Shown one piece after another: positions 1,246-48,040 of a stretch of DNA of 64,000 nt; position 1 is the stretch's first letter, and each line of letters starts with the position of its first letter. Below the pieces are notes generated by a model. It was given only the letters and a program-made list of their open reading frames with translations. It ran no database searches and was not told the DNA's origin. Position numbers and translations under genes: made by a program. This DNA comes from Narcine bancroftii (Eukaryota), in assembly GCF_036971445.1 (NCBI RefSeq), contig NC_091473.1, positions 250,976,001-251,040,000 of the forward strand, read 5' to 3'.

Positions 1246-1351
1246 ATTCTTCATCCATTGTAACCTCTGGGCCGAGCACATTCAGCATGAAAACAGCAGG
1301 TGCTGAGACCTCCACAGCAGCCTTGCAGACCTCTTCATCGCCTCAAACCTG
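1246..1351 (+). CDS. Receptor gene A, Ser/Thr-rich stalk exon (DSSSIVTSGPSTFSMKTAGAETSTAALQTSSSPQT-W)
   Basis: cttag acceptor and gtcagt donor; phase 1 start, typical after an Ig exon; phase 2 end joins the TM exon in frame (TG+G=Trp); mucin-like composition. Confidence 0.7.
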
Positions 1352-1729
1352 GTCAGTCACTCTAAGCCACAACTCTTCATTGCACAGGTTAATCACTGAA
1401 TTAGGGCCATCTGAAAATGACTCAGAATCCGAATTCATTGACATGAAATTTGTTGTTTTACTGCAGAGTCACAGGGCAAAATAAATAAAAATAGTGCAGG
1501 AAAAAGCCAGTCAGGCAGTATCTGTGGTTCATTGTTTATTCAGGAATCTGATGGCAGAGGGGAAGAAGCTGAGTGCTTGTCTTCAGGCTCCTGTGCCTTT
1601 TATTTCCAATGTTCAGAGCATGATCTTCCAATTCTGGAAGGTTTGACACTCAAAGGAATGGCCAATTGGAGTCCTTCTTCCAAAACTGCTCTTTGCCTAT
1701 ATCTGCAGACACTCGGGTCTGATCCTGAC

Positions 1730-1910
1730 TTCCGATACTGACTCAGACAGACTGTGGTCTTTCCTTCAGGAAGTCCAGAATCCATTTACCAAGAGGGGTG
1801 CTGAGTCCCAGCGAGGACAGCTTCTCTACCAGCCACTGGGGAATGACTGTGTAAAACGCTGAGCTGAAATCAATGAACAGCAGCCTGGCATATGAAGAGT
1901 CGTTCTGCAG
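1730..1910 (-). mobile_element. Rex1/Babar-type LINE RT fragment
   Basis: Minus frame [25 protein letters not shown]....WILDFL.ERPQSV; related 3' pieces near 41600-41900, 44230-44710 and 56150-56470. Confidence 0.7.
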
Positions 1911-2214
1911 GCATATAGCCTACTAACCAGAGGACCCAGAGGAAATTCAGTCACTGAGAGAATGTGCAAACACCACGCAAACAGTATCGGAGGTCAGGAT
2001 CAGACCAGAGTTCCATTTATGCCAAATTCTTATTTTAACAGAAGCATTCATTTTTTTTGGTAGTAGACTTATAGAACTGGCAAAGCTGGATAGCAGGAAA
2101 AAATTAGGACATCACACACTCACCTTGTCCTGTTCAACTCCATTGCGTTCTCTTAAATACCAGTGGGATAGCTTGTACATTTCTAGAATTTAAATGAATT
2201 TTATTTTAAAATTT

Positions 2215-2440
2215 AAAAGTACAGCATGGTAACAGCCCCCTTGCTGTAACAGCCCATTATGCCCAATCACACTCAATTGACCTACATCCCCCAGTACGTT
2301 TTTGAAAGATGGGACGAAACCAGAGCACCGGAGGCAACCCATGCAGACACGGGGAGGATGTACCAATGCCTTACAGCCAGCGCGGGATTCGAACCCGGAT
2401 CGCTGGCGCTCTAACAGGGTTGCGCTGACAGCTACACTAA
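2215..2440 (-). mobile_element. tRNA-derived HE1-like SINE
   Basis: Reverse complement of the family seen at 46808-47055, with B-box GGTTCGAATCC and shared core. Confidence 0.75.
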
Positions 2441-2717
2441 TTGGGCCATGCGTACACTGTGTTCATATGTACTTCACAGTTATACTCTTCAGATCAAAGG
2501 TACATTAGAATTTATTGCCATGAGCATGCCACAAAATTTGTTGTTTTGCAGCACCATCACAGTCCAAATATTGCTATAAAATTACATTTAGAAATGAATT
2601 CATTAGTGCAAAAAGAAAAGAAAGTGAGGTAGCATCTGTGGTTCATTGTCCAGTAGATTGGAGAGGAAGGAATTCCAGCGCACCCATAACTGCCAATGTC
2701 TTACTTGCATTCTGCAG

Positions 2718-2836
2718 GAATCAACATTCTTTTCCATATCCTACTGTTCTCTCAGTGGTCTTGTCAGTTTTCTTCCTGCTATTCATCGCTGCCACCATTA
2801 CTTGTATCAAAATAAAATGGCAGAAGAAGAAAAATG
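2718..2836 (+). CDS. Receptor gene A, transmembrane exon (NQHSFPYPTVLSVVLSVFFLLFIAATITCIKIKWQKKKN)
   Basis: tctgcag acceptor, G|gtaagt donor; uncharged hydrophobic stretch of about 20 aa followed by a basic stop-transfer KIKWQKKK. Confidence 0.85.
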
Positions 2837-3324
2837 GTAAGTTCAGTTCAATGTCAACTTTGAGAGGTGAGCGTAAATTGTTATTTGAAATGTTTGTACT
2901 TTAATGAAGGGCCTTTTACCTCATGTAGAAACTCTCAATGGGTACTCAGCACTGGTTCAGCAAGAATTAGAAGGGGTATTCATATCAATTTGCCTTAGCT
3001 TTAGAAGGATGCAAAGATTCTGTAGGAGGATCCCAAAAGGTTTAATTGAATGTTTCCAGAGATGAAGGATTTTACTCATCAACTTAAACGTTCAAAGCCG
3101 TTGGTACCTTTGAGCTTCGATGGCTCAGGTAGGGTAGGTGGATGGTAACTGTTCTCCTCAAACAATCACTCATGGACCAGCTCTCCAAGAATGATGAAAT
3201 GAAACATGAAAGTCTGCAGATGCCGTAATTGTGTAGTTAAAAAAAAATGCTGGAGGTGCTCAGAAGGTCTCATAGAATCCATGTTTCGGGCCCTTCTTCA
3301 AGCTAATGTGCACAAAGTTACTGG

Positions 3325-3658
3325 TGTTACAAACCAGCAACCACAAAGAAGGCATATCACCCGGGTAAAGATGAACAATTACTTTATTAACAAAAAAATT
3401 CACCTTCAAAAGTTAATTCAAAATCCCCTCTTTTATAACAATGCCCACTGGTTACTATGCAAATCTCTATAACAGTGTAAAACTAATAAATTCCCCAGCC
3501 TAAATATAACTTACGTAATCAAAGTCTAAGCTACACTTCCAACCAGCTCACAGAAAAACTTAGACACAAAACACACAAGACTCACAAAACTTCGATCTCA
3601 ACCGAAGTAAAGATCATGAATAAAATTCAGTTTGTTAGGTAAATTGAAGCCAAAGATC

Positions 3659-3714
<56 letters not shown>

Positions 3715-4049
3715 GTCTTGTGTTGCTTGTAGAGAGAGGAACCGCTGGCTTGGTCTGGATCCTTCTGGCTGCCTTCGGAATATTCATCCATTTTGAAATG
3801 CCCAACATTCTAAACTGTCCTCCAGACCATGACTCATGCTCCGGGCCTTCTGCCACTCCACAGCACCACCCAGTGGTGGTTTATCATCCAAGTCCAGAAT
3901 TTTTTTTAGATTATTTTCTGCACATGCTCAGTCCATCTCCCACTCTCTCAGCAGTCCACCTTCACCTTGGCTCTCTAAGGCAAACTGTCACTTTTTAACA
4001 TAAAACCACACAACACATAGGCCAATATACAATACAGAACTCTGTAACT
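3325..4049 (-). mobile_element. Solo LTR (Gypsy-type) with internal (GA)n
   Basis: Termini tgttac...gtaact, 4-bp TSD ctgg (3321-3324, 4050-4053); splits an older repeat. Confidence 0.8.
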
Positions 4050-4209
4050 CTGGGAAAACTCAGCAGGTCTCGCACCATCTCAGCAAGTCTCTTCTCCCTT
4101 CTGGTCTTCAGTCTTAATCTGATACCTTCCTGATCTTTATTTATACCTTGAAGAAGGGCTTAGGGCCAAAACATCAGTAATGTATCTTTAACTCTTATGG
4201 ATTCCACAG

Positions 4210-7200
4210 TGAATATGGCCATTAGGTCTCTGGCACGGAGTCTGGTACTGCGGCTAAGAAGGGAAGGGAGGAGAAGAGGTGAGCTGTAGTGATAGGGGAT
4301 TCCATAGTTAGGAGAACAGACAAGAGGTTCTGTGGAAGAGATCGAGTATCCTGGATGGTACGTTGCCTCCCTGGTGCCAGAGTCTGAGATATCTCACATC
4401 GAGTTCACAGCATTCTCAGGAGGGAGGGTGAGCAACCAGATGTCATGGTCCATGTAGGTAAGAAGGGTAAGGATGTCCTGCAAGGAGAATTCAGGGAGTT
4501 AGGCACTAGGTTGAAGGACAGAACCTCCAATGTCGTGATCGCAGGATTGCCACCCGTGCCACGTGTGAGTAAGGTTAGAAATAGGAGGATAATGCAGTTT
4601 AACACGTGGCTATAGACATGGTGCAGGAGGGAGGGCTTCATGTTTCTAGATCATTGGGCTTTCTTCCAGGGAAGGTGGGTCCTGTTATGATGTGATGATA
4701 TGCATCTGAACTGGAAGGGGACTTGTATCCTTCTGGGAAGATTTGCAAGGGCTGCTCCAGTGGGTTTAAATTAGATTTGCAGGGGGAGGGGAACCAGAGT
4801 GCCAGAGCAGTTAGAGGAGTAGGGGAAGGAAAAGAGGATGTGAAAATTTCATGCACCATTAGAAATTAATTGGTTTAATGTGGTGGAAATGTTCGCAGAT
4901 GCATCTATTTCAATGCAAGGAGTGTTGTAGGAAAGGCAGACAAGCTTAGAGCATGGATTAGCATGTGGAATTATGACATTGTGGCCATTAGTGAAACTTG
5001 GTTCCAAGAAGGGCAGGACTGGCAGATCAATAATCTGGGCTTCTGTTGTTTTAAACATAATAGAATAGGGGGGGAGAAATGAAAGGGGGAGGAGTGGCAT
5101 TGCTCATCAGAGAAAAAAAATCACAGCTGTGCTCAGGTAGGACAGAGCAGAGTGCTCATCTACTGAGGCTATATAGGTGGAGCTGAGGAATGGGAAAGGT
5201 GTGATCACATTCATGGGGTTATATTATAGACCGCCCAATAGTCAGTGAGAATTGGAGGAGCAAATCTGTGGAGAGATAGCAGTCAACAGCAGGAAATAAG
5301 TTTGTGAAGGTCAGAGATTTTAACTTTCTACATATTGACTGGGACTCCCATACTGTAAAAGGGCTGGATGGCTTGGAGTTTGTTAAATGTGCTCAGGAAA
5401 ATTTTCTAAATCGATATATAGAGGTACCAACTAGAGAGAGCACAATACTGGATCTCCTGTTAGGGAACGAGACAGGTAACAGAAGTATGTTTAAAGGAAC
5501 ATTTTGTGTCCAGTGATCAGTTTCAAGTTAATTATGGAGAAGGATAGGTCTGAGCCTTAGATTGAGGTTCTAAATTGGAGAAAGACCAATTTTGAGGAAA
5601 TGTGAAAGGATCTAGAATGTGTGGATTGGGATAAATTGTTTTCGGGCAAGGATGTGCAAAGTAATGGAGAACCTTCAAAAGTGAAATTTTGAGAGTTCAG
5701 AGTTTGTCTGTTCCTGTCAAGATCAAAGGTAAGGTTAGAAGGCACAGGGAATTTTGGTTTTCGAGGGATATTGGGGATCTGGTTCAAAAGAAGAGATGTG
5801 TATAACAGGTAGAGGCAATGTGGAGCAAATTAGGTTCTTGAGGAGTATAAAAAATGCAAGTTAAACCTAAAGAAAGAAATCAGGAAGACTAAAAGAAGAT
5901 ATGAGGTTGCTTTGGAAACAATGCGAAGGAAAATCCTACGGGTTTTCTAGGCATATTAACAGCAAAATGATAATAAGGGACAAAATGGGTCCCCTTGAAG
6001 ATCAGAGTGGTCAGCTTCGTATGGAGCCAAAAGAGATGGGGGAGGATTTAAATGTTTTTTCCATCAGTATTCACTCAGGAAACAGGCACAGATCATGGGA
6101 AATAAGCATGGAAACTAAACAGATTAAAGAGGAGGAAGTGCTGGCTGTCTTAAAGCAAATATAGGTGGATAAATCCCCAGAGATAGTTCCTCAGACCTTG
6201 AGGGAGGCTAGTGTGGAAATTGAAGGGACTCTGGCAGAAATATTTAAAATGTCCTTAGCCACGGGTGAGGTGCCAGAGGATTGGAGGGTAGCTCATGTTG
6301 TACCATTGTTTAAAAAAGGCTCTAAAAGTAAACCAGGAAATTATAAGCCGGTGAGCCTGATGTCAGTAGGGTAAATTATTGGAGGGTGTTCTGAGAGATT
6401 GGACAGCCAAGGGATGATTAAGAATAGTCAGCAGGGCTTTGTGTGTCATCGGTCGTGTTTAACAAATCTTATAGGGTTTTTCAAGAAGATTACCAAGAAA
6501 GTAGATGAAGGAAAGACTGTGGATGTTATCTATATGGACTTTAGTAAGGTCTTTGACAAGGTCCCACATGGGAGGCTAGATCAGAAGGTTCAGACACTAG
6601 GTATCCATGGAGATGTTGTAAACTGGATTAGAAATTGGCTGAATGGGAGAAGACAGAGTGGTAGTGGATGGTTGCTTCTCAGACTGGAGGCCTGTGATCA
6701 GTGGTCAGGGATTGGTGCTGGGACCATTGTTGTTTGTGGTCTATATCAATGATCTGGATGATAACGTGGGAAATTGGATCAGCAAATTTGCTGATGACAC
6801 TAAGATTGGAGACGTTGTGGACAGCGAGGAAGGGTTTCAATGCTTGCAGAGGGATCTGGGCCAACTGGAAAAATGGGACAGAAAATGGCAGATGAAATGT
6901 AAATGTAGACAAGTGTGAGGTGTCTGCATTTTGGAAAGACAAACCATGGGTGGTCATACACAGTAAATGGTCGGGTACTGAGGAGTGTAGAGGAACAAAG
7001 GGATCTGGGAGTACAGATACATAATTCCATGAAAGTGGCGTCACAGGTAGACAGGGTTGTAAAGAAAGCTTTTGGCATCTTGGCCTTCATAAATCAAAGT
7101 ATTGAGTATAGGAGTTGGGATGTTATGGTGAGGTTGTATAAAACATTGGTGAGCCCAAATTTAGAGTATTATATGCAGTTCTGGTCGCCAAACTACAGGA

Positions 7201-7695
7201 AGGATATCAGTAAGATTGAGAGAGTGCAGATAAGATTTACTAGGATGTTGACGGGTCTTCAGGAGTTGAGTTACAGGGAAAGATTAAGCAGGTTAGGACT
7301 TTATTCCTTGGAGCATAGAAGAATGAGGGGAGATTTGATAGAGGTTTACAAAATTAAGAGGTGTATAGACAGAGTAAATGTGAGTAGGCTCTTTCTATTT
7401 AGATTAGGAGAGATAAATACAAGAGATCATGGGTTTAGGGTGAATGGAGAAAGGTTTAAGGGGAACATTAGGGGGAACTTTTTCCTCTCAGAGAGTGGTG
7501 GGAGTGTGGAATGAGTTGACATCTAACATGGTAAATGTGTGCTCACACTTAAATTACAAAAGTAAACTGGATAGATACCTGGATGGGAGAGGTCTGAGGG
7601 GTTATGGAATGGGTGCAGGTCAGTGGGACTAGCAGTATAATGTTTTCGGCACAGACTAGAAGGGCTGAACATACTGTAATGTTTTAAGGGTCTAA
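4210..7695 (+). mobile_element. Near full-length decayed CR1 LINE (SGNH-esterase ORF1, APE endonuclease, RT) in a gene A intron
   Basis: VVIGDSIVR, DFNF..IDW, VPEDWRVAHVVPLFKKG, YMDFSKVFDKVPH, KFADDTK; many frameshifts and stops. Confidence 0.92.
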
Positions 7696-7696
7696 T

Positions 7697-9973: not shown

Positions 9974-10020
9974 ACACAAATAGAAAGAGGAATGAGGAAA
10001 ATCTATCAGGAAGCTCCACG
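9974..10020 (+). CDS. Receptor gene A, first cytoplasmic exon (DTNRKRNEENLSGSST)
   Basis: ttttccag acceptor, ACG|gtaagg donor; 47 nt, phase 1 to 0, linking the TM exon and the ITIM exon in frame. Confidence 0.75.
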
Positions 10021-12367: not shown

Positions 12368-12523
12368 GAGATCCCAATAGTCTATACCACTATAAACTTC
12401 TGCCCCAAAGATAATGTGGAAAATACCTACATGAATCTTCAGAGCCTGAATGTACAAGAAGCCAGGAGTCAAAATGACTCGGAAAATGTCACGTATTCAG
12501 CAGTGGCTCACAAAAGCCAATAA
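12368..12523 (+). CDS. Receptor gene A (probably CD300/pIgR-like inhibitory receptor), terminal exon with two ITIMs
   Basis: Pyrimidine tract plus ttcaaag acceptor; reads EIPIVYTTINFCPKDNVENTYMNLQSLNVQEARSQNDSENVTYSAVAHKSQ*; ITIMs IVYTTI (12377-12394) and VTYSAV (12488-12505), plus YMNL. Confidence 0.85.
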   Translation, partial: EIPIVYTTINFCPKDNVENTYMNLQSLNVQEARSQNDSENVTYSAVAHKSQ

Positions 12524-12629
12524 ATTCAAGCACTGAAGAACACCAAGAATGCTTCACTGAAAGATTGTCGGGTGAACCTTTCTTTGTTTTAATGGAAGCT
12601 CATCCCCTCAAACTCACAACAGCAATGAA

Positions 12630-15215: not shown

Positions 15216-15219
15216 TTTC

Positions 15220-31875: not shown

Positions 31876-31915
31876 ATGAAGTTAATTGCTCTACTGTTGC
31901 TCACTGTCATTTCAA
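31876..31915 (+). CDS. Receptor gene B, signal peptide exon (MKLIALLLLTVIS)
   Basis: acaATG with A at -3, basic then hydrophobic leader, phase 1 donor A|gtaaga in frame with the Ig1 exon. Confidence 0.8.
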
Positions 31916-31974
31916 GTAAGATTTTTTATTCTAACAACATTAAATATCTGACTTAATAACAATCTATCTTTTGT

Positions 31975-32690: not shown

Positions 32691-32853
32691 TGATCTCATG
32701 AACACTGCTTGACTTGCCAACTCCAGCTCAGATTATGATTTACTGATCATCTGTTTTTAAGTTAATGTTTACTATTTCAGTTTTTTTTTCCCCCATGAAG
32801 TGTCTGTTCAAGCAAAGGTTTTGGTGCTTATGTACATTTTGCCAATAAATTCA

Positions 32854-33819
32854 TTTTTTTTTTTTTTTTTTTTCTTTTTCTTTGGCTTGGCTTCGCGGAC
32901 GAAGATTTATGGAGGGGGTAAAAAAGTCCACGTCAGCTGCAGGCTCGTTTGTGGCTGACCAGTCCGATGCGGGACAGGCAGACACGATTGCAGCGGTTGC
33001 AAGGGAAAATTGGTTGGTTGGGGTTGGGTGTTGGGTTTTTCCTCCTTTGCCTTTTGTCAGTGAGGTGGGCTCTGCGGTCTTCTTCAAAGGAGGTTGCTGC
33101 CCGCCAAACTGTGAGGCGCCAAGATGCACGGTTTGAGGCGTTATCAGCCCACTGGCGGTGGTCAATGTGGCAGGCACCAAGAGATTTCTTTAGGCAGTCC
33201 TTGTACCTTTTCTTTGGTGCACCTCTGTCACGGTGGCCAGTGGAGAGCTCGCCATATAATACGATCTTGGGAAGGCGATGGTCCTCCATTCTGGAGACGT
33301 GACCCATCCAGCGCAGCTGGATCTTCAGCAGCGTGGACTCGATGCTGTCGACCTCTGCCATCTCGAGTACCTCGACGTTAGGGGTGTGAGCGCTCCAATG
33401 GATGTTGAGGATGGAGCGGAGACAACGCTGGTGGAAGCGTTCTAGGAGCCGTAGGTGGTGCCGGTAGAGGACCCATGATTCGGAGCCGAACAGGAGTGTG
33501 GGTATGACAACGGCTCTGTATACGCTTATCTTTGTGAGGTTTTTCAGTTGGTTGTTTTTCCAGACTCTTTTGTGTAGTCTTCCAAAGGCGCTATTTGCCT
33601 TGGCGAGTCTGTTGTCTATCTCATTGTCGATCCTTGCATCTGATGAAATGGTGCAGCCGAGATAGGTAAACTGGTTGACCGTTTTGAGTTTTGTGTGCCC
33701 GATGGAGATGTGGGGGGGCTGGTAGTCATGGTGGGGAGCTGGCTGATGGAGGACCTCAGTTTTCTTCAGGCTGACTTCCAGGCCAAACATTTTGGCAGTT
33801 TCCGCAAAGCAGGACGTCA
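32854..33819 (-). mobile_element. Young 5'-truncated RTE LINE in gene B intron 1
   Basis: Uninterrupted 295-aa ORF (FTYLGCTIS, LLFGSESW, RWMGHVSRM), A-rich tail, very similar to the copy at 23869-25048. Confidence 0.92.
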
Positions 33820-33854
33820 CAGCACAAAACTATATGAGCAGAGAAAAGACCCAC

Positions 33855-34210
33855 CACCAGACACATTTTTCCATCTTCTCCCCTCTCAGCCTTTCATAGG
33901 GATCTCTCCCTCCGTGACTCCCTTATGTACTCTTCCCTCCCCACCCATCGTCACCCCCCCAGCACCTTCCACTGTGGTCAAAAGAGGTGTAATACCTGCA
34001 CCCACACGTCCTCCTTCACCACGGTCCGAAGTCCAAAACAGACCTTTCAGGTGAAGCAACACTTCATCTGTACCTCCAAATAACTCATTTACTGCATCCG
34101 GTGCATCCTCTGTGGCCTTCTCTACATTGCAGAGACTGGTCCCAGATTAGGAGATTGCTTGGCCCAACATCTCCTCTCCATCCGCAACAAAAGCGACCTC
34201 CCCGTGGACA
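33855..34210 (+). mobile_element. Penelope-like element, GIY-YIG endonuclease fragment
   Basis: QVKQHFICTS..LIYCIRCILCGLLYIAET..RLGDCLAQHL; related tails near 770-1235, 39990-40445 and 47330-47615. Confidence 0.75.
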
Positions 34211-34505
34211 AGCAGCACCATTTTCCTGGGGTGAGAGTAGCAAACATCAGGGGAGGAAAGGTTAGGGGAGACTATCATACACACAGAGAAGTGGGTTCCT
34301 GGAATGTGTTGCCAGGAGTGCTGGTGGAGTCTGGCACAACAGAGACATTTAAAAGACCCTTAGGCGCATGGATGAAAGAAAAATAAAGGGTTATGGGGTA
34401 GAGAAGGTTTTCAGCAGGTTTAAATAGGTCGTACAACATTATGTGCCGAAGGGCCTGTTCTGTGCTGGAATATTCTATACCTTGATCATTAATTTCACCC
34501 AACAG

Positions 34506-34814
34506 ATACAGTGGCCTTTCACTCGATGGTGATCAGAGCTGAAGTAGGAGAAACAATGACGGTAGAATGTCCTCACACAGAGAAATATGGACGTGCAGGC
34601 TGGTGTAAAACATATCTCCCAGAAATGTGCAAAGTGGTGGTGAGCACCAATGGAGAAGACCACAATGGAAGAACATCAATCAGAAGGAAAAAAGGGTCTG
34701 TTTTTGTAACCATATTTGAAGTTGAGACAATCGACTCGGGGATATATTGGTGTGGACTCAGACAGGCAGATTTTATCCACATTTCAGATACCATCATGCT
34801 GGAAGTTTTCACAG
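34506..34814 (+). CDS. Receptor gene B, Ig-V domain 1, CD300/pIgR/TREM type
   Basis: caacag acceptor, G|gtagga donor, phase 1-1; VECP...WCKTYLPEMC (extra Cx7C pair)...GRTSI...DSGIYWCG. Confidence 0.92.
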
Positions 34815-35142
34815 GTAGGAAGTTTTCTGAAGACTATAGGACATAATATGCTTGAGGCAGTGACACAAGGCCTGGTGTCAAATTAGGAGCTCATTACACG
34901 AGCTTCGCCTCTGCAGATAATATTGCATCACCTACTGTACTCAAGAACAGGTTGACTTGCCTAGACGGCAGGTTTATCAGCATCTGGGTGTCAGTCGGAT
35001 CGAGATCCTATGTCAGGACTCTGAGGCTGCGTTATCCTATGGGGCCCGCGTTATCCTGCAGTTGGCTTCTCCATCGTCAGACATTTTGCCACTTCAGTTT
35101 CTTGTTGTTTCTAACCTCGTGACTTTTCTCATCCACAAGCAG

Positions 35143-35436
35143 ATTCATGGCAGCCAAACAAAACCACAGTCAATGGTGAAATGGGAAAAGCCATCAATAT
35201 ACATTGCCAGTACAAGAAGCAACATGCAAGCTACAAGAAATTCCTGTGTAAAGTAGCTTCCGTGAACAGATGTCGCATCATAGCTAGCTCCAGTCCGAGT
35301 AAAAACAGAAAGTATGATTATAACCTGGTGGTCACCTTGCATAGAATTGATGAAGGAGATGAAGGAGAGTATTGGTGTGGAGCCACAGACACTGTTCACT
35401 TTGAGATTGGACAGGTTAAAATCCTAGAGGTCGAAG
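35143..35436 (+). CDS. Receptor gene B, Ig-V domain 2, CD300/pIgR type
   Basis: aagcag acceptor, G|gtatga donor, phase 1-1; IHCQY...YKKFLCKVASVNRC (Cx7C)...DEGEYWCG. Confidence 0.92.
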
Positions 35437-36296
35437 GTATGAATTAACATAAAATAATTTAAAAATTGTCTTCAAGAAGTTTATATTCCATATTTCAGGC
35501 CGAAGCCCAAAGCATCAGGAATAGGTCTTTTTCTCCTTTGGACTCTGCAAGACTTGTTGAGTTCCTGCAGCATTTCTGTGTGTTTTTAACTAAAATCTCA
35601 GAATCTGCTGACTTTCGTGTTTCATCCTGCTCAGGGAATTCCTTGTGGAATATTCCAGTCAAGGGCACAGTTACATAGCTCCATGCTAGCAGTGATACAG
35701 GTTGACAAGGGGAGGGGGAGGGGTGAAGGTGATGTTTGACGCACATCGGTCAGGGCACTGAGTGCAGGATCAGGGGCGACGCGTTACCGTTAGACAAGAT
35801 GTTTGTGAGATTACACTTGGAGAACTGTGCACAGTTTCGGTCTCTCAGCTCCAGGGCTGGAAGGAATGGAGTAAAGATTCACAAGAATGTTCCCAGGACT
35901 GGTGGCTTGAATTACAAGACCGGATAGGGTTGGACTTTGCTTACTTGAGGTCAGGAGGCTGAGGGTGACCTATTAAAGATTTATAAAATGATGAGGGACA
36001 CAAGTTGGGTTCATTGCAAGTCTTTTCCCCTTGTTAGAGGGCATAGGTTTAAGGTGAAAGATTTAAAAAGGTACGGGAAATTCACTTTCCTCATTCCGAG
36101 ATTGATAAATGGAACAACCTGCTGGAGGAAGTGGAAGAGGCAGGTACAATTGTCATATTTAACAGATGTTTAGGCAGATACATTGATAGGAAAGGTTCAG
36201 AGCAGCCAAATCTCTCAACAGGGGCCCCCCGCATACCCCCTCCCCCCCCCCCCCACCCCCAGCTCAGTGATCACAGCACATTCGAGTAGGAGCCTT

Positions 36297-36504
36297 TGTA
36301 ATGAATTGCGATTCACTAGAAGTGTGCTGTACTGATGACTGGTCCTGCCTCCCAGCCCCTCCTCCGGGGGCCTATATATAACCCTGGTTTCCCGCCTAAA
36401 ACCAGAACCTCTCTGAAGCCTGTTCGTGAACCCTACCTGGGTTATAAACTAATAAAAGTGTTAGTTCTCCCTCTAGTTGAGTGTGAGCTTTTATCGATGC
36501 TACA
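36297..36504 (+). mobile_element. Intact 208-bp solo LTR
   Basis: TGTA...TACA termini, perfect 5-bp TSD gcctt, TATATATAA at 36373 and AATAAA at 36451. Confidence 0.9.
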
Positions 36505-38595
36505 GCCTTGTTTTCTTTTCACCTCATGATACAAATACCCCACCTGCCCCTTCCCCTTGTGTTTCCTTGTACTTGGTAGGAGAGAAGTACGGAAGAAACC
36601 AAAACTTGACTGACTCACAGCGAAGGGGACCATAAACTTAGGGCAGAGTCCCAAGGGTACCATAGCCGCACAAAGGTTGAGAATGGCTGATTTAGAGAGA
36701 TATGGGGTTGACTGCAGGCAAGCGGGATGAGGCCAGAATACTAGGTTAAGTTAGCATAGGTTCAATGGGTCAAAGGGTCAGTCAAAGGATTTGGGGAGAA
36801 GGCAGGAACTGGGTACTGATGGTGGATGATCAGCCACGATCACAGTGAATGGCGGGGCTGGCTCAAAGGGCCAAATGGCCTACTTCTGCACCTATTGTCC
36901 ATTCTGTGCTGTCTATTTCGAATCGGCTCAAACATCTCGTTTGGCTGGAACTCCCCATATCGCTTGGTTAAATACATAATGTATTGTTCGGAGGGAGTTG
37001 GCCGCAACCCAGTGAGGTAGCCAGAAGAACTTCTCTCATGGTCCAATGACTTGGAATTCATCCTGATCCTCACTCATGTGCAGAGTTTTGTTTCTTGTGG
37101 TTCCCCCCCCCCACCCCACACCCCAAATCACATGCCAAAGATGTAGGATTGCAAGAGGTCAATTTGCCATGGTAAACTGCCCCCTGTGTGCAGGCAGCAA
37201 GCAAGAGGTAGAATCCTGGGAAGGGGGCTGGAGTGATGGAGAAGATGAAATGGGATTAGGGTCAATGCATTTTTACACTGAAAATGCCCACAGGCAAGTC
37301 CCGTCTCTGACGGATGACATCCCGAATCTTGATTTAAAGACTTCAGTAAATTTAAGAACAGAAGATGGAGATGTGAAGGACTCTTTTCAAATTTTTTTAA
37401 TTAAAGTTTAGACATAAAGCACGGTAACTGGCCATTTCGGCCCACGAGTCTGCATTGCCCAATTTACACCCAATTAACCTACTCCTCCAGCACATTTCGA
37501 ACAATACAAGAAAACCAGAGCCCCCAGGGAAAACCCACACAGACCCAGGGAGAATGTACAAGCTGCTTACAGACAGCGCGGGATTCGAACTGGCGCTGTA
37601 AAGGTGTTGCACTAATCACTACACCAACCGTAGCGCTCTTGTCAGCCAGAGAGCGGTGAATCTCAGGTATTTGCTCCCATGGGCAGCTGAGGAGGTATTT
37701 AACCCGGAGAATCATAGGTATCTGAATAGTCAGGGTATGGGAGAAGCCAGGGAAGTGGGGCTGAGTGGGTGAATGGAATGGCAGAGCAGACTCGATGGGC
37801 CGAATAGCCCTCTTCTAGTAAAGGTTCCATTATTGTTACATTTAGAATGTTACATGCATTAAATTCTTTAACTTTTGTCTACCATAAGGCAGACAGAGTT
37901 GCCATTTTATCCAGTGCCCTTCACAGAAACCTACAGCACCTGGCCGTCTCCCCTCCAAGTACTGACCAGTCCTGAGCCTGCTTCACTTCTGAGATCAGAC
38001 AATCCCAGGTGTATTCAGGCTATTGGGTGCTGGTCTTATAAAAAACAGAAAGAATCAGCTGAAAACCAATTTCTGGAGGAACTCAAGGGGTCAGGCTGCA
38101 TCTGGGGAGGATGGCTAGTATCTCAGGTCGAGACCCCACCTCAGGATAGGGAAGAGAGATGGGGTGGAGTCAGTCAGTGACCAAGGAGGTGTGAAGAGTG
38201 ACTGACTGATGGAGCCAGGTTTTGACAGGATGGTGATGGGGGTTCAATTGGGAGACAGAGGCAGCAGATTGGTAGGTGGAAGCAGATAAAGTTGAGGGGA
38301 GCGGGACAGAATATGAAAAGGTGAATGGTAGGAAAAAGAGCAAAGGTGGAGACACAGGCTGAAGGGAGGAGATTGGCAGAACCAAATTAGGAAGGACAGT
38401 GGTCAGGTGCCACACAAATCCTTATACTTCCTGTATCAAAAAAAAATATGCTGACCATTGATGTTTTGCCTTTCTGCTGCACCCCACAACCAATCGGTTT
38501 ACAAAACTTTCAGGGCTTTTGTGTCATAATGTATCATCTATTTATTTATTTGTTTGTTGGTTTGTTTGTTTGTTTATTTCAACAATCCGTCCCAG

Positions 38596-38632
38596 GAACT
38601 TCGAGTCAAAACATAACCAACATCAATAAAAG
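38596..38632 (+). CDS. Receptor gene B, short stalk exon (GTSSQNITNINK)
   Basis: cccag acceptor after a T-rich tract, AG|gtgaga donor; phase 1 to 2 like the gene A stalk exon; NIT sequon. Confidence 0.65.
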
Positions 38633-39364
38633 GTGAGAATATGACTGTGATCTTCAAACTCAATTATTGACGAACTGAAGTCATGATTAGATGGTTCCGC
38701 TGTTCTAATGGGACAATATATTGTATGTGCCATTGTACAAGACGATCTGAAAATTTTACTTTTAAAAAAAAAAATCAGGGTCATCCCACACAGAGTCTAA
38801 AATTCTTACCTTGATGACAGTCTTCCCGCCAGCTCCAAGGCAATCTCGTTCCCCCATTTAGTCACTTGGAAAGTCTCAGCACTCCTCCGTGGGGTCCGTC
38901 CGCCCACTCCACCCGCTCTCAACACTGTACAGCCTTTAAACGGCCTGTTAATGACAGTGATTGGTTTTAAAATATCCAAATAAAATTTAAATGATCAATT
39001 GTTATTAAAATGTTGTAATTGGCTTATAACAGCATTCACTGGGCAGCGATAATAGCCATATTTTGTGGATGGGGGGGGGGGGGGGGGGAGTCGTCTTCTT
39101 CAAAGTTTCTCATTCAAAATATGCATTTTAGGTGAAAATTCCAGGGTCTTCCAATACAGAGTTGCCCTATACAACGGCATATAGGGTATGTGTCCTTAAT
39201 GTCACACTCCTCTATTTAATCCTCCCTTCAAACTTAACTTGAGGAAGGGCTCAAGCCCAAAATGTCAGTCATATATCTTTATCTCGTACGGATGCTGAGA
39301 AACTAGCCGTTCCTCCAGCTTTTCTGTGTTTTTACACTTATTTAATCTTCCCATTTATTTAATC

Positions 39365-39737
39365 CAGTGATTTTTGAACTTTTTCTTTCCACTCATATTC
39401 CACTTTAAGTAATCTCTATGCCATCAGTGCTCAGTGATTAGTAAGGGATTGCTTAAGGTGGGATGTGAGTGGGAAGAACAAGTTTGAAAACCACTGTTTG
39501 TATCGTCCCTAATTGACTCGTTATGTGCACGGTTTCAGAACTCCAAAGGAAATGGACCAATGACAATTTTTCTCAAGAAAAATATTTCAGTAACAATTGG
39601 GTCTAGAGCAGTGATTCTCAACCTTCCCTTCCCACCCACATCCCACCTTAAGCAATCCCTTACTAATCAGAGCCCCGATGGCCTAGGGATTACTTAAAGT
39701 GGTATGTGAGTGGAAAGAAAAAGGTTGAGAACCACTG
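39365..39737. mobile_element. Composite hAT (Charlie-like) MITE: two ~130-bp units plus a spacer
   Basis: CAGTG..CACTG termini at 39365-39496 and 39609-39737; outer flanks atttaatc/ctttaatc; single units at 52320-52441 and about 12066-12177. Confidence 0.8.
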
Positions 39738-41092
39738 CTTTAATCGATGTAGAAGTCAGAGAGCAAGACTCTGTCAATTGGGGACATTCCATGAGCTCCT
39801 CATTCGATTTCTTTCTGATTCCCTTCCATCGTCAGAAGGGATGATTGTCAGCAAGGTCAGAATTCAATGCCCTACTTGGAGCTGTCCATGATGCTGAGCA
39901 ATCCCAGGGGTGAAGGTCCTTCCAACCATGTTACTGGGAGAGGAACCCAAAAGGATAAATTCATTGCTCCTCAGCTCTGACCATCCCAATAGAGTGGATC
40001 TCCCAGTGGCCACCCATTCCAACTCCCCATCCCATTTCCCTTGCTGACATGTCTGTCTATAGTCTCCTGCATTGCTAGACTGAGACCACCCACAAATTGG
40101 AGGAACGGCACCTCATCTTCTGACTGGGTGTCCTCCCACTGGATGGCATTAATATCAACTTCTCGGGCTTTGGTTAAAAACCTCCCCATAACCTCTCCCC
40201 CCTCCACTTCTTCCCCCAGCTCTGTCTCTCCCTTTCGCACAGACATGATGAATTCTCACCTCTCCCTTTACCATATCCAACTAACACCTTCTGTTGGTCC
40301 AGAATCCTCCTCCAGCCAGCGCTGTATGATTTCTGAGATTTCTTGCTTCTGGCTTATTCCTTGAAGAAAGGCCCAGACCCAAAATGTTGGCAACATATCT
40401 TTGTCTCCTATACACATTGAAAAGACCCACCATCTCCAGACTTTTGTATTACACTCTGTCACATGTGCCCAGGTGTGGTGAGAAAGTTTCTTTCGCAACC
40501 AATCCAGCGAGACATCCCATACCTAGTGCAGCAAGCAAGTCACAGTACTGATGTGCAGTTAGAGGCATCAGTGAGGAAAAAAGTAATGTTATTTTATAAG
40601 TGTAAGGTCCCTTCAGGAAAATAGTGAGAAAGAAACAGTCCTCGAATCAGGCAGTGCGTAATCTCACACTCCCGAATCTTCTCCCCACCACCCAGGGATG
40701 GGGTGAGGGTGACAAGAGCATGGCCAGGGCGGGGTTCATCTTTTAATGTGTTGCCTGCTTTCCCAAGGCAGTGGGAGGTATCGAAGGAGGGGAAAGAGGA
40801 TGGTGTGATGGCTTGAGATCCATTTATCTCGCTCTGGAGTTTCTAGCAGTGTTGAACGAAGTAGTTCCCTCACCACAAAGTGATGTGTCCTCTCAGGATA
40901 TATTCCATGCTAAGTCTATTTAAGATGACAACTTAGTATGGTACATCCTCAAGAGGTTCCGGTGAGACATCTCTCAGCAGCTGTGTTTAAGACTAAAACT
41001 GCCTCCTGCTTCAATTGACAAACTGTTATTTCATTTGGCCGGTGTTTTCCACAAAGCCTCAATCTCATTCAATCTATTTCAATTGTTTATAG

Positions 41093-41206
41093 TAGCAGCG
41101 TGCCAATAGGGTACTTCCTGCTTCCGGCTGTGTTGGTAATACTGCTCATAATCCTGATACCCACCCTTGTCAAGAAATGGAGACAGATGTGCAATATTTC
41201 ACAAAC
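41093..41206 (+). CDS. Receptor gene B, transmembrane exon (SSVPIGYFLLPAVLVILLIILIPTLVKKWRQMCNISQ)
   Basis: tttatag acceptor, gtaagt donor; phase 2 start matches the stalk exon; uncharged TM followed by KKWR. Confidence 0.85.
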
Positions 41207-42011
41207 GTAAGTAGATCAAAATATTTCTTCCGCTATTAGAATAATAACAAAACAGCAACCATTTTGTGTGATAGCACAATAAATATATTGTCACACAAAG
41301 ATGGGTAGTGGGGCAGGTTGCGGGAAGGAAGCAGAGAGACTTAGGTAGATTAGGAGAATGGGCAAAGTAGTGCCAAATGGAATAAAATATTGGAGAGTGT
41401 ACAGTCATGCATGTTAGTTTCCAACTGTTGGAACGATGTCAATAGAGAAATGCAAAACTGGCAATGGCAGACAAATAATCACTGGAGGAAATCCTCATAT
41501 GGGTAGAAATGGTTAGTCAACCTTTTCTGATCCTGGTCCCTATATCAATGTTAGAGGGAAGGGGGTAATATTTCAATTATTCCTACCCTTTGTACCATTC
41601 AGAACATACTATCCTACAGCATCTCAGTGTGGAGCAGCAATGGTCTTGTATCGGACTGTACAGCACTTCAGTGGACAGTGAAAACTGCCCAGCTGATTAT
41701 TGGCATGTAATTGCACACCACTGAGACATCCATCAGGAACACTGTCTGGGCAGGGTGAAGAGTATCATCAAGGATGAATCTCACCCTAACTATGGACTTT
41801 CTACTCTCCTTCCATCCAATAGGCATTACAGGAGCCTTTGGTTTCAAACCAGCAGGTTTAAGAAGAGCTCCCCCCCAACCCGAGGCTGTGACCCTGCTGA
41901 ACCTTAAGTCACAGTGCTGAATGGTGCTGCACTCGCATTGCACTGTCAGTACTTTTATAATTGTTTGCTTGCTGAATGCATTTGTTTTTATTCACACATA
42001 GTTATTTGTAT

Positions 42012-42327
42012 TGTGAGAGATTATATCATATTTTATATTGTGTATAGATATGCTTTTGAAGGAGATAGATTGTGGGGGTTTAGTGTAGGTTACAAACAAA
42101 CACTTCACAAAACAGATCTCATTTAAAATACCAGTGCTCTGCACAAACCAGACAGTCCAGGCTCCGCATGCCTTTGCAAAAACTTTGAAGGATGCCTATC
42201 GAGACTTCACAAGTAGGTGTTAATTGGACATGCTGTGGAGTAATAGATTATTGTTTTGGAAAGCAACAAATGAATGGACTCAGAAGATTGCTTTTCTAAG
42301 AGGGTCATGTGGCTTTCTCTCAGAGAA

Positions 42328-42380
<53 letters not shown>

Positions 42381-42980: not shown

Positions 42981-45600
42981 CCATTTTTAAAAAATTTCCA
43001 AATTGGTTGCTCGTTTGTATCTGATTGCTTTCATACTTAACTTGGCTCAAAGACAATAAAGTTGAATCTAATCTAATAAAGGGTTAGGGTTAGGGACTGA
43101 GCATTTCCATTCATGGATGCTGTCTGGCCTATTGAGTTTCTCCAGAAATTCTTTACCTGCAGAGGAAAGGATGTCATTAAACTGGAAAGGATTTGGAAAA
43201 AATTTGCAAAGATATGATTGAGCTACAAAAATAGTTGGTTAGGTTGGGATGTTTCTCCTTGAACCATAGGAGGCTAATTGGTGGACTGAAAAAGGACATA
43301 AATTAGGCAAATAGTCCTCATCTTTTCCACAGGGAAGGCAAGTCTAAAACTAGATGACGTGGATTTAAAGTTGGGAGAGATTTGAAAGGGAAATTGGCAG
43401 CCTGAACAGAGTAAATAAGCTCGCTGATTGGAAACAGCCTTGGGTTGAACTGAGACCATGACAGACACCATATAAAATGCTCAATAGTCAAGAAAGTAGG
43501 CCATTTAGTTTTGACCAATAAAGCAGCCTTTCCTTTCTTGGTGAAAAGTTCTGGTCCGAAACTTTGGCAGTTTTTTTTCTCCCCCTGATGCTGCTCAATC
43601 CACTGAGTTCCTCTCGCGGATTAGTTATTTTTTGGCTCCAGATTTCAGCATCTGCAGTCTCTTGTGCATCTTCAGGTTTTCCTTCCCATTCCGTGGAGTG
43701 GAAGAGGAATCACAGTAATAATCCCCAAAAGGGACGTTTTATGCGTGATCCTGAGGCATCTCCTAACATCAGCCACTGCTCACAGAACGTTCCAGAATTC
43801 AATGCAGCAGAAAGAATTACAGGCATTCAAACTTGCCCTCATGCTCAGTGTTGTCAATAAGGGATGGGAAAAGCTCGTATGAGCCTCTGCATTATACAGT
43901 TGTTCATTTTTGCCCTCACCCCCAGTGAAGTTAGAAACCTATTGCTGGCATTGAGGTACAGCACAGCTGCCTGACTGTCAATCAACTGCTTCTTTCATCT
44001 GGGTTAAATTAGTCAAGATTCGTCGATTATTCAACTGGAGACGTTGAAGACCCTTTCTGTACCCAATATAGCCCTGCCAGTGGATGACACTTCTAAGAAG
44101 GAACCCTGCCAATCTTTCCCTGCACTTGGACATAGTAGCTGTTGGTGAAACCAGCCAGCTCTTTCCCCACCCCTTTAATCACAGTCCCTCAGCATGGATC
44201 TTGCCTTGGGAACCAGGGAGAGGTGAAGTCAAATTTATTATCATTTGATTGTATAAGTACAACCTGATGAACCAGCGTTCTCCAGCCCTCAGTGCAAAAC
44301 ACGCAGACAAATAATACATATGCAGGACAAGTATTTCATCTATATAAATAAATATTGTTTTGTAAATATTAGAGTCTCGGAGGGTCAGTGTGAGTGGTCG
44401 TTCTGCATTCTCACTGCCTGTGAGAAGAAGCTGTTCCTCAGCCTGGTGGTGTTGGCTCTGATCCTCCTGCATCTCTTCCCTGATTGGGAGATGCTGTGTG
44501 CAGGGTGGAAGGGGTCCTCAATGATTTTGTGAACCCTGATGATCCCGGTAGACTGCATCAATGGTGGGGGGGTTTCACATAACGGTGGCCGGTAGTCTAG
44601 CCCACTTCACTGTTGCGCCTTCTGCCAAATGGGATGTTGGGTGTCCACAATAGGTCACTAGTTCAGCGAACTCCAAGGAACATGGTGCTCTCCACCCGCT
44701 CAACTACTGAGTTGAAGCATGATGGTCGGAGGCAACCGATTCATAGATCTGCATCCCACATGGGTCCCTGTCCAACCCCTCCACCCTGTCATCCTTCTCT
44801 TCTCTACATTCCCATCAAGATAGAAGATTTTGTTCAAAATGTTGACCACTGATGGTGTTAGAACCACTGCCTCATGGGTAGTTTATAATCACAGCATTTG
44901 CAGTCTCCTGCACCTCCCCAACTCCTATATCTCCTCCCTTTATATACTTTCTATCGCCCTTTAAATACTTTTTAATCGCCCTTTCCCACTTAAGAATCAA
45001 CAGGACCACACCAGCAATCAGGGGACCGGGGTTCGAATCCCGTGCTGGAAGGAGTTTGCTCTCTCTCCCTGTGTCTGCATGTCTTTTCCCTGGGGCTCCA
45101 GTTTCCTCCCACCGTTCGAAACCTACCAGGGGTTGTAGGTCAATGGGGTGTAATTGGGTGGCACGGGCTCATGGGCCAGAAGGGCCTTTTACCTTGCAGC
45201 ATGTTTAAATTAATGTAATAAATTAAATACCGTGCAGCATGTTTAAATTAAAGCCTGAAAGACTGACTGAGCATTTCTCTCCACGGATACTACCTGGACT
45301 ACATCTCCTCAGGATTCCGGCAACTCCCTCATCTTTTGTTCAAACCCCAGTGGTGGGTCTAGGACTCGTGGCTACTGGAATCAGCCCTCTGTGGTTTAAC
45401 GCTCAAAATGAAGTGGTTTTCTGTTGGTGAGACAGGCAAGTAGCAAGTGGTTGCAGCCTCCTGTAGGAAGTTTGGCTCAGTCTGTGAGTACAAAGTGAGA
45501 GAGTGGAACTTGGGATAAAAGTTGAAGCTGCAGACAAGGGGGGAAAGGAATAGAAGACCGTGCTTCTGGAACGTGACATGGTGTTTTTTTTCCTCCCTAG

Positions 45601-45638
45601 TTAATAACGAAATGTGAGGAACATGTCTTCCGACCAAG
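45601..45638 (+). other. Receptor gene B, small post-TM exon beginning with in-frame TAA TAA (relic cytoplasmic exon)
   Basis: Strong acceptor tttttttcctccctag and donor AAG|gtaaga; joined to the TM exon it gives AC+T (Thr) then TAA at 45602-45604. Confidence 0.6.
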
Positions 45639-45769
45639 GTAAGAATGCAGTGAGTGTGAAATTGCACATTGTTCCTCTACTTAATCCTTTAAAACAATGG
45701 AAAAATTACAAATATTGTTTAGTTCATTTACCTCAGTTGACAATACAATTTGGAAAACATGCTTCTCAG

Positions 45770-46650
45770 ACCAGAAGCCTGTGACTAGTGGCTTTTCACA
45801 GGAATCAGTGCTGGGACTATTGTTGTTTGTGGTCTATATCAATGATCTGGAATGATAATGTGGGAAAATGGATTGGCGTTTGTTGATGACACTAAGATTG
45901 GAGGCGTTGTGGACAGCGGGGAAGGCTTTCAAATCTTGCAGAGGGATTTGGACCAACTGGATCAATGAGCTAGAAAGTGGCAGAAGGAATTTAATGCAGA
46001 AAAGTGTGAGATGTTGCATTTTGGAAGAACAAACCAAGGTAGGACATACACAGTAAATGGTCGGGCACTGAGAAGTGCGGAGGAACAAAGGGATCTGGCG
46101 ATACAGATACATAATTCCCTGAAAGTGGCGTCACAGATAGACAGGTTTGTAAAGAAAGCTTTTGGCATCTTGGTCTTCATAAATCAAAATATTGAATACA
46201 GGAGTTAGGATGTAATGGTGAGGTTGTACAAGACATTGGAGAGGCCAAATTTGGAGTATTGTGTGCAGCTTTGGTCGCTAAACTACAGGAGGAAGAATAT
46301 CAGTAAAATTGAAAGAGTGCAGAGAAGATTTACTAGGATGTTGATGGGTCTTCAGTTGACTTACAGGGAAATGAGAGCATAGAAGAATGAGGGGAGATTT
46401 GATAGAAATATACAACATTATAAGGGGTATAGACAAGTAAATGTGAGTAGGCTCTTTCCACTTAGGAGAGATAAATGCAAGAGGACACAGCTTTGAAGGA
46501 AAGGTTTAAGGAGAACATTAGGGGAAACGTTTTCACTCAGAGAGTGGTGGAGGTGTGGAATAAGCTGACATCTGACGTGGTAAATGCGGACTCACTCTTA
46601 AGTTATAAAAATAAACTGGATAGGCACATGGATGGGAGAGGTCTGGATGG
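45770..46650 (+). mobile_element. CR1 3' fragment
   Basis: Closely matches 6670-7595 (LHFGRTNQGRTYTVNGRALRSAEEQRDL). Confidence 0.88.
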
Positions 46651-46807
46651 GGGATCACACTGACCTAAAACAATATCCTGCGAGGGTATGTTTGATTTCC
46701 TATTTAATTTCCTTATCCTATTGATCCAAAAGATGGAAAACACTTCTCTGCAGGCCCCTCAGTTCTGGATCAACCTCACTGTGGCCTAGATTAAAGCTTT
46801 GTCCGAA

Positions 46808-47055
46808 GGGCAGCACAATTAGCTTGGCGATTAGCGCAACCCCTTCACAGCACCAGTGATCGGGACCGGGGTTCGATTCCCACACTCTGAAAGGAGTTTG
46901 TACCTTCTACCGGTGTTTGCATGGGTTTTCCCCAGAGGCTCCAGTTTCCTCCCACCGTTCGAAATGTACTGGGGGTTATAGCTTCATTGGGTGTAAATTG
47001 GGTGACACGGACTCGTGGCCCGAAATTGCCTGTTACCGTGCTGTACGTCTAAATT
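46808..47055 (+). mobile_element. Full-length HE1-like tRNA-derived SINE
   Basis: gggcagcac 5' end, GGTTCGATTCC B-box, core ggtttt...gctccagtttcctccca, tail cctgttaccgtgctgta..tctaaa. Confidence 0.8.
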
Positions 47056-47627
47056 TAAATTTTTAATTTAATTTCCACGCATTAGGGAGGCTGACCTACA
47101 TTCATTCAGCTGTCTGCTAAGAAGCAAACATGGCATTGCCTGGGTCAAGTCCAATATGTCCTTTTGATTCGGGTACTATCATCTCCTTTGCAGTCTGACC
47201 CGTTGACCATTTTCTTTTTGACCTTCTCTTTCTCTCTCTCATATTTTAACAGTATTTACCTTGTCATTTAAATATTGAATTGACTTGTTTTAGTTGGAGA
47301 TGTCCCGAAGAATCAATTGCATATCCTGATTTCTGCTTAAATACTTCCCATTCTCCACCTCTTCCCCATCCCTCTCCATTCAGAGCAAACCCCCTCCCCC
47401 CTCCCCCTCCTCCACTGCCTGCTGGTGTGCCTTCCCTCCCTGACCTACCATTTAGCTCCTACCTGTGGGACCATGCTCCTCCTCATGCCCCTCCCCTCCC
47501 CCATTTTATTCAGGAGTTTTGCTCATACCTTAATGAAAAGCTCAGACCTGAATTGTTGGTGATACACCTTTATCTTTGCTGTTTGACCTGCTGAGTTTCT
47601 CCAGCGTTGAGTTTTCACATTTTACAG

Positions 47628-48040
47628 ATTCCACTGTGACCAACTGCCTTCCTCACCGAAGCAGGTCTGGGAACTTCCTCCAGTCTGAAGGATATGAAAG
47701 AACAAAATGGAGACATCAAGGTCCATTCATCAGAATCACAGGAACATTTTACCAGAAAAGGGCTCAGGCCCGAATCGTCAACAGCTTTGCATCGATGTTG
47801 TGTGACCTGCCATGTTTCTCCAGCACTTTGGCGCGTTACACTTGCTCCCAAGCATCTGAAGACTCCTGTCACTCCCCTGTCGTTCACATCCCAGTGCAAT
47901 TGCCTTCTGCTGTTCTAAACAAAGGTGCTCCCCTACTTTCGAAGGTCCTGCATACGGTTTTTTGAAGTTATGATGGTACAATAACAAGACTGTTGTTATT
48001 TACTTTCATGTAATACATTAAATTAAGTTCATCTCATGCA
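47628..48040 (+). other. Possible terminal untranslated exon of gene B
   Basis: ttttacag acceptor and ATTAAA at 48017-48022; weak because the acceptor abuts a repeat tail and a repeat fragment lies inside. Confidence 0.3.

Follow-up and report, generated by a model that had tools for sequence, protein, structure and literature searches.

Two same-strand genes for type I receptors, here termed A and B, lie in a 64,000 nucleotide stretch of the genome of the lesser electric ray, the torpediniform Narcine bancroftii (NCBI RefSeq assembly GCF_036971445.1, contig NC_091473.1, positions 250,976,001 to 251,040,000 of the forward strand), hereafter the window, the coordinates of which count from its first letter. 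The window most probably represents part of a CD300/pIgR-type receptor gene cluster, in which gene A would encode an inhibitory receptor bearing immunoreceptor tyrosine-based inhibitory motifs (ITIMs) and having as its partner a gene upstream of the window, termed U, and in which gene B would derive from another subfamily and have lost its ITIM tail through decay of the exon encoding it. A preliminary description, made from the sequence of the window, had recognised A and B as type I receptor genes on one strand in a chondrichthyan, and exons, splice sites and RefSeq models agree on this. It had also called the cluster little-described, whereas RefSeq already has models of both genes and the family fits the skate MDIRs as these are summarised in PMC3031540. 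What is added beyond this is essentially the decayed ITIM exon and the U/A pair, and none of these results would surprise a specialist in comparative immunology.

Gene B, by its match to the annotated proteins, is the 'polymeric immunoglobulin receptor-like' gene of Narcine bancroftii for which isoforms X1-X5 (XP_069798205-210) have been predicted. It spans 31876-41206 plus alternative 3' exons, 19 kb downstream of gene A, with all exons on the plus strand and flanked by canonical AG/GT sites. Its features are as follows, with the evidence for each in parentheses.

31876..31915, plus strand: leader exon, MKLIALLLLTVIS, with a phase-1 donor (identical to the N-terminus of P0001/P0153)
34506..34814, plus strand: V-set domain 1 exon, containing C-x7-C, phase 1 to 1 (Pfam V-set E 6.5e-9; 100% identical to P0001)
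35140 or 35143..35436, plus strand: V-set domain 2 exon, containing C-x7-C, phase 1 to 1 (Pfam V-set E 3.1e-6)
38596..38632, plus strand: stalk exon of 37 nt with two N-glycosylation sequons, phase 1 to 2 (tblastn, splice sites)
41093 or 41096..41206, plus strand: transmembrane (TM) exon encoding an uncharged TM, with a phase-2 start (tblastn, splice sites)
41823..41907, plus strand: alternative last coding exon of X1-X3, encoding the tail ...THYRSLWFQ... (tblastn to residues 263-292 of P0001; splice sites)
45601..45638, plus strand: short post-TM exon proposed in the preliminary description, encoding Thr then TAA (sequence and splice sites)
47628..47753, plus strand: putative relic of the ITIM tail exon of the ancestor, to which X4 splices out of frame (tblastn, frame analysis)

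A stop-to-stop scan of the plus strand found two open frames with C-x7-C and YxC motifs at 34.5 and 35.1 kb, and a hydrophobic segment lies at 41.1 kb. Exons were compared one at a time, with database proteins standing in for the spliced products and the three-letter junction codons being computed. The top match of the first Ig exon in a HMMER search of 1.8 billion representatives was P0001 (292 aa), the pieces of which sit on the gene B exons at 100% identity by tblastn, bar flanking residues beyond the splice sites. Both domains score above the Pfam V-set cut-off of 26 bits (36.4 for the first, D1, and 27.8 for the second, D2) and both carry the additional cysteine pair previously ascribed to them, as WCKTYLPEMC and LCKVASVNRC. 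Tandem NAGNAG-type acceptors are present at 35138-35142 (aag/cag) and 41090-41095 (tag/tag), owing to which RefSeq isoforms differ by the presence of one Ala at the second Ig domain or one Ser at the TM exon.

The earlier model of gene B, a protein of about 265 aa consisting of leader, two Ig-V domains, stalk, TM and a 12-aa tail, corresponds to isoform X5, which is 266 aa long and has two accessions. It is not the only 3' end, as had been supposed, since RefSeq has three: X1-X3 contain 41823-41907, in X4 the TM exon is spliced to 47628, and X5 terminates in ...NISQT. Thr followed by TAA results both from the 45601-45638 exon and from read-through of the TM donor. The alternative exons are not repeated elsewhere in the window.

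The last of these exons appears to be a fossil. At 47628-47753, 6.4 kb beyond the TM exon and on the same strand, is a match to the ITIM tail of the Pristis protein P0006 (20 of 25 residues, or 80%, E 1.9e-7), and the same stretch matches the ITIM tail of Hemiscyllium P0106 (E 4.8e-6). In one frame, the ITYSTVT of P0006 is represented by FTDSTVT; the remainder of the relic is in another frame, reading ...GTSSSLKDMKEQNGDIKVHSSESQEHFT where P0006 has VIYSNLKDMKEQNGDIKIHSSESVEYST, in which there is an in-frame TGA near the start and from which the ancestral stop has been lost. All three tail tyrosines are replaced, by Asp, Ser and His respectively. The G of the acceptor AG used by X4 is that of the relic Asp codon (TAT-like to GAT), such that the first tyrosine substitution provides the base that lets the dead exon splice out of frame. 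Translation of the third frame from 47628 yields the X4 tail, FHCDQLPSSPKQVWELPPV, and stops after 19 more residues. A search between 41.2 and 47.6 kb for relics of the ancestral middle cytoplasmic exons found nothing above noise (scores of 30 or less).

The simplest reading is that gene B would descend from an inhibitory receptor whose three-tyrosine tail exon decayed, leaving it tail-less; the decay of this exon would be the reason why its predicted products terminate 12-39 residues past the membrane. The high identity of the linker in the relic suggests that the exon may have died not long ago. Likewise, because the 25 residues between motifs 2 and 3 (80% identical to the sawfish orthologue) are more conserved than the ectodomain, the loss of the tail would be either recent or selected.

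Close relatives of gene B have diverse signalling modules. Three-tyrosine ITIM tails are found in Pristis P0006, Pristiophorus P0030 and Hemiscyllium P0106, charged TMs in Hypanus P0016, Hemitrygon P0250 and Mustelus P0003, and short tails in Narcine gene B and Leucoraja P0005. The TM of gene B is of the uncharged type found in the ITIM-tailed P0006 and P0030 and in the tail-less Leucoraja protein. When whole gene B was used in a word-index protein search, three relatives were found, a number that is limited by the index and is no measure of absence.

It is improbable that gene B still signals through a new motif, THYRSL, made at the junction with 41823-41907 and replacing the dead tail with something resembling an ITIM or an immunoreceptor tyrosine-based switch motif (ITSM). 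The exon is used by RefSeq isoforms X1-X3 and the sequence fits the pattern [SIVLT]xYxx[ILV], but its tyrosine is a lone one, 14 residues from the membrane, and with Thr at -2 and Leu at +3 it is no clean fit to either the ITIM or the ITSM consensus. Furthermore, this tail is carried by no B-type relative examined, and use of the exon is known from RefSeq models rather than reads.

Expression of gene B is supported indirectly. Four sequencing runs, retrieved via the stretch comprising its first Ig exon, intron and second Ig exon, contain 0.61-0.95 of the words sampled from that stretch, of which exons make up 0.62: the figure was 0.61 in two shallow runs and 0.92-0.95, intron included, in two deeper ones. 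Contigs from these runs were then placed on positions 1000-5290 of the window, and the runs can be taken as RNA because spliced gene A contigs occur in them.

Gene A is a second RefSeq 'polymeric immunoglobulin receptor-like' gene of Narcine bancroftii, with predicted products XP_069798184-190. Four of its exons fall within the window.

1246..1351, plus strand: stalk exon, Ser/Thr-rich, phase 1 to 2 (100% tblastn match to residues 384-419 of P0158; RNA)
2718..2836, plus strand: TM exon, uncharged TM, C-terminal end ...KWQKKKN, phase 2 to 1 (100% identical to residues 420-458 of P0158; RNA)
9974..10020, plus strand: short cytoplasmic exon of 47 nt, phase 1 to 0 (RNA loose end, splice sites, P0158 match)
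12368..12523, plus strand: last coding exon, with ITIM IVYTTI, YMNL, ITIM VTYSAV and stop (coding part identical to the C-terminus of P0158)

The scan of stop-to-stop frames had marked the hydrophobic segment at 2.7 kb and a frame with two ITIM-like motifs at 12.3-12.5 kb. RNA contigs from the four runs span 1244-1352 and 2717-2836, the latter with 0 mismatches, and the GT..AG joint 1351>2718 is present in all four, so the stalk donor used is that at 1351 and not the second phase-2 GT at 1388. Past 2836, a loose end of 29 letters from run X2 has a single occurrence in the window, at 9974, where it is preceded by AG; this second junction is seen in one contig. Position 3303-3364, a candidate post-TM exon from a rule-based scan, was dropped as the RNA indicates 9974-10020. 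At the other end, the loose end before 1244 translates as ...KISFYLQVSE, which looks like the G strand of a V domain and is the sequence with which the final V domain of both P0244 and P0248 terminates. The C-terminal ends of P0158 and its cluster mates P0244, P0243, P0245 and P0247 are exactly the four gene A exons of the window.

That the Ig exons of gene A would lie upstream of the window, as had been anticipated, is in accordance with RefSeq isoform X1 (594 aa), which comprises a leader, four V domains, the stalk, the uncharged TM and an ITIM tail reading DTNRKRNEENLSGSST / EIPIVYTTI...YMNL...VTYSAV. The two ITIMs with which gene A had been said to end are those of 12368-12523, IVYTTI and VTYSAV, spaced by 37 residues with YMNL in between. 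Gene A combines at least one tail motif of the form (I/V/L/S)xYxx(L/V/I) with a TM lacking charged residues, the two features by which an ITIM receptor was defined. RefSeq isoforms vary in their number of V modules, and X5 (P0246) terminates just past the stalk (...SSSPQT) without a TM, for which reason the inhibitory receptor is predicted to exist in a soluble version too.

The TM and last exons of gene A are matched by the tails of Hemitrygon P0047, Heptranchias P0079 and Mobula P0100, with homology of the last exon to those of P0047 (E 7e-7) and P0079 (E 1e-5). The gene A proteins were retrieved with an alignment in which P0047, the TM exon and the tail exon of gene A each had a row; the tail region of P0047, when searched by itself, failed to find the gene A product. 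Products of both A and U carry PF07686 (V-set).

Gene U corresponds to a further series of RefSeq isoforms (XP_069798179-183; among them P0248). In the RefSeq protein models it has five V domains, each 100% identical to one of those of gene A, while the stalks differ by one residue and the leaders at four positions. Its TM, LWAVLRWLLFKALLFCTVSIKC, carries Arg and Lys, and its tail is free of tyrosine. By these models gene U is a classic adaptor-coupled activating form and the putative functional partner of gene A. Near-identical ectodomains joined to opposite signalling modules are thus a feature of U and A, according to RefSeq, and not of A and B, which had previously been put forward as the paired receptors.

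It is hardly likely that U and A are one gene, with common V exons being spliced either to an upstream activating TM cassette or to the inhibitory cassette of the window. The complete identity of the V domains, and stalks only one residue apart, are what such an arrangement would produce. However, RefSeq gives two genes with separate isoform series, the leaders are not the same, both the number of domains (four in A and five in U) and their order differ, and the stalk exon is present as its own copy in the window.

All V domains of genes A and U have Ser at the second Cys of C-x7-C, leaving one odd Cys. The same loss has occurred in several shark relatives of A/U, whereas those in Hemitrygon and Mobula retain the pair. 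As A and U lack the second Cys, the C-x7-C hallmark holds, among the genes of the window and U, for gene B only.

The relationship between A and B is much more distant. Identity to the V domains of gene A is 31-37% for B-D1 and 26-29% for B-D2 (BLASTP, E about 1e-12). A domain tree was constructed from 61 V domains of 28 proteins over 118 columns, with no mammalian sequences, using IQ-TREE in its quick mode with support from the SH-like approximate likelihood ratio test (SH-aLRT). In this tree B-D1, B-D2 and the A/U type form three clades with support of 99-100, each containing both sharks and batoids. The B-D1 clade (support 99) holds the first domains of two-V proteins from Leucoraja, Pristis, Hemitrygon, Hypanus, Mustelus, Pristiophorus and Hemiscyllium, and the B-D2 clade (support 100) the last domains of the same proteins. 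The A/U clade (support 99) consists of 'CMRF35-like' and 'pIgR-like' proteins, including the Leucoraja erinacea and Amblyraja homologues, and within it modules from one species cluster together, the pattern termed 'modular domain'. The teleost pIgR domains D1 and D2 fall into clades of their own, with no resolved connection to gene B, the deep forks remaining open at 118 columns.

Branch lengths were also uneven. That of B-D1 is 0.71, against 0.23-0.28 for Leucoraja and Pristis, and the gene B domain branches are longer by a factor of two to five than the corresponding branches of the Pristis orthologue (for D1, also than that of Leucoraja). In other words, change has been faster in the ray with the copy that lost its tail, through either relaxed constraint or adaptation.

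Genes A and B are accordingly best described, from these comparisons, as distant paralogues belonging to two old elasmobranch subfamilies. The paralogy originally proposed stands in this broad sense (E about 1e-12), but not as that of a recent pair. Similarly, of the exon layout said to be common to the two genes, the phase 1-2 stalk and the phase-2 start of the TM exon are indeed shared, but the TM exon ends in phase 1 in gene A and in phase 2 in gene B, and the short post-TM exons have no sequence similarity. A blastn comparison of the DNA of the gene A region with gene B (word size 9) found only common transposon fragments and no exon similarity.

It is very unlikely, and already largely refuted, that A and B are a paired couple, with the tail-less paralogue having arisen by local duplication of the inhibitory gene and binding the same ligands. 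They are indeed encoded on one strand, at a distance of 19 kb, with identical phases for the stalk and TM start and V domains of the same broad type. Yet the V domains have merely 26-37% identity and fall into separate clades (support 99-100) older than the shark-batoid split; the stalk, TM and post-TM exons are without DNA similarity; the tails differ in type, that of gene A being like P0047/P0079 and that of the gene B relic like P0006/P0030; and gene A has, by RefSeq models, a partner of identical ectodomain in U.

Matches of both gene B domains among solved structures in the PDB are headed by pIgR, CD300A, CD300C, CD300F, NKp44, FCMR and TLT-1, such that gene B, as judged by its closest structures, can be placed in the CD300/pIgR/FCMR/NKp44-type V-set group; the earlier assignment of both genes to the CD300/pIgR/FCMR group is upheld. 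Chains of pIgR score best for both domains, but each of these scores is a sum across five domains, of which D5 provides the best match; after pIgR, the order is CD300A, CD300C, two-domain teleost pIgR, CD300F, NKp44 and FCMR. Sharks were reported in one survey to have no pIgR homologues (PMC4016189), leaving a role that gene B, with its pIgR-like name, its best PDB scores and its two V domains as in teleost pIgR, might be thought to fill as the cartilaginous-fish counterpart carrying polymeric IgM across epithelia; this is the least credible of the alternatives, given that the E-values for pIgR are inflated by five domains per chain, that single-domain CD300A and CD300C score level with the two-domain teleost pIgR 5f1s, that the tree has no supported grouping of B-D1/B-D2 with teleost pIgR D1/D2, that close relatives carry ITIMs or a charged TM in the manner of leukocyte receptors, and that a 12-aa tail is too short for sorting signals. 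The RefSeq name 'pIgR-like' is an automatic similarity label, with tails and relatives pointing to leukocyte paired receptors.

Several points weigh against the proposed cluster of an inhibitory gene A, an activating gene U and a gene B with a decayed tail. The V exons of gene A, encoded upstream of the window, and gene U as a whole are known solely from RefSeq models, and the 100% identity between U and A could in part stem from the way in which these models were constructed. The RNA contig over the gene A stalk, 1244-1352, has one mismatch and might derive from U. For gene B, the splice junctions and the relative use of the 3' ends are taken from models and splice sites, not from reads, and since the THYRSL of X1-X3 loosely fits an ITIM/ITSM pattern, the gene may not be signal-dead.

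If the cluster is nevertheless as proposed, family knowledge would predict that the ITIMs of gene A, once tyrosine-phosphorylated, recruit SH2 phosphatases and so damp cell activation, and that gene U activates through adaptor pairing with its TM Arg or Lys. The gene B subfamily would be an old one with two V domains, the members of which in other elasmobranchs have ITIM tails, charged TMs or no tail. Gene B itself would have kept the uncharged TM of the inhibitory form while its tail acquired the substitutions, frame break and in-frame stop described above. Most likely it would reach the cell surface and bind ligand without a signal of its own, in which case it could serve as a decoy or have a modulating effect through association with its relatives. 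More tentatively, and with somewhat less than an even chance of being correct, gene B may be an inhibitory receptor caught in the course of turning signal-less and decoy-like, with the identical U and A ectodomains on swapped TM/tail cassettes representing, by the RefSeq models, the other route to paired receptors at the same locus.

A number of repeats surround these exons. Copies of one transposon family are found at 1040-1243 and 47420-47620, and also at 19299-19341 (minus strand) and 43133-43146. The 3' ends of the transposon stop a few bases before the acceptors of the gene A stalk exon and the gene B relic exon, giving the pyrimidine tract, and both exons start with ATTC; the transposon ends beside the two acceptors could be due to chance or represent a recurrent source of acceptors. 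Directly downstream of the gene B relic exon, at 48127-49821, is a G-rich 50-bp minisatellite of 34 copies (92% match), which accounts for the peak in GC and GC skew at 48-50 kb. Retrotransposon remains with reverse-transcriptase-like frames on both strands, at 5300-7600, 24000-29500 and 32850-33820, occupy the long intron of gene A, the spacer between A and B and the first intron of gene B. Further downstream, on the minus strand at 60978-61229, an open frame matches the C-terminal end of S-adenosyl-L-homocysteine hydrolase (Pfam AdoHcyase, E 3.7e-15) and probably represents the final exon of an adjacent gene with the opposite orientation; its ending, ...KPNYYRY, we take to resemble the AHCYL (IRBIT) type.

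The locus adds an annotated, RNA-supported example of CD300/MDIR-like receptors from a torpediniform ray. Elasmobranchs have at least two old subfamilies of such receptors, within each of which signalling modules have been swapped or lost. It also urges caution on the question of pIgR in cartilaginous fish, as the automatic label 'pIgR-like' here covers leukocyte-type paired receptors and not a demonstrated transport receptor.

Among known systems, the skate MDIRs are multigene families of activating and inhibitory receptors structurally like CD300, TREM and pIgR (Cannon et al. 2006, cited in PMC3031540). Compared with the MDIRs as there described, genes A and U are alike in having four and five near-identical V modules, ITIMs in one and an Arg/Lys TM in the other, and a soluble isoform; variable tandem CD300-like V modules in activating, inhibitory and secreted forms are thus all found in A/U, according to the RefSeq models. 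They differ in the loss of the second Cys of C-x7-C. By contrast, gene B has a constant number of two domains, D1 and D2 being separate lineages, unlike the MDIRs.

Gene B resembles mammalian CD300 in its V-sets with C-x7-C, and the structures of CD300A, CD300C and CD300F match it at E 1e-8 to 2e-5. The CD300 / CMRF35-like cluster mixes ITIM, charged-TM and motif-less members. Unlike CD300, which has one V domain, gene B has two, gene A four and gene U five. Likeness to pIgR consists in the best PDB scores (mainly from D5), the match to the two-domain teleost structure 5f1s and the RefSeq name, whereas no clade that includes teleost pIgR domains has support in the tree and the tails are ITIM-bearing or near-absent rather than sorting tails: those of gene B are 12-39 aa long and that of gene A is of the ITIM type, neither being a long tail with sorting or endocytosis signals.

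The closest named relative of gene B is the 'CMRF35-like molecule 8 / pIgR-like' protein of Pristis pectinata (XP_051890302-04; P0006), to which it is 60% identical, rising to 65% in D2. The two share the same uncharged TM type, and the tail of P0006 is the intact version of the relic exon, keeping the motifs ITYSTV, VIYSNL and VEYSTL where gene B has Asp, Ser and His and a broken frame.

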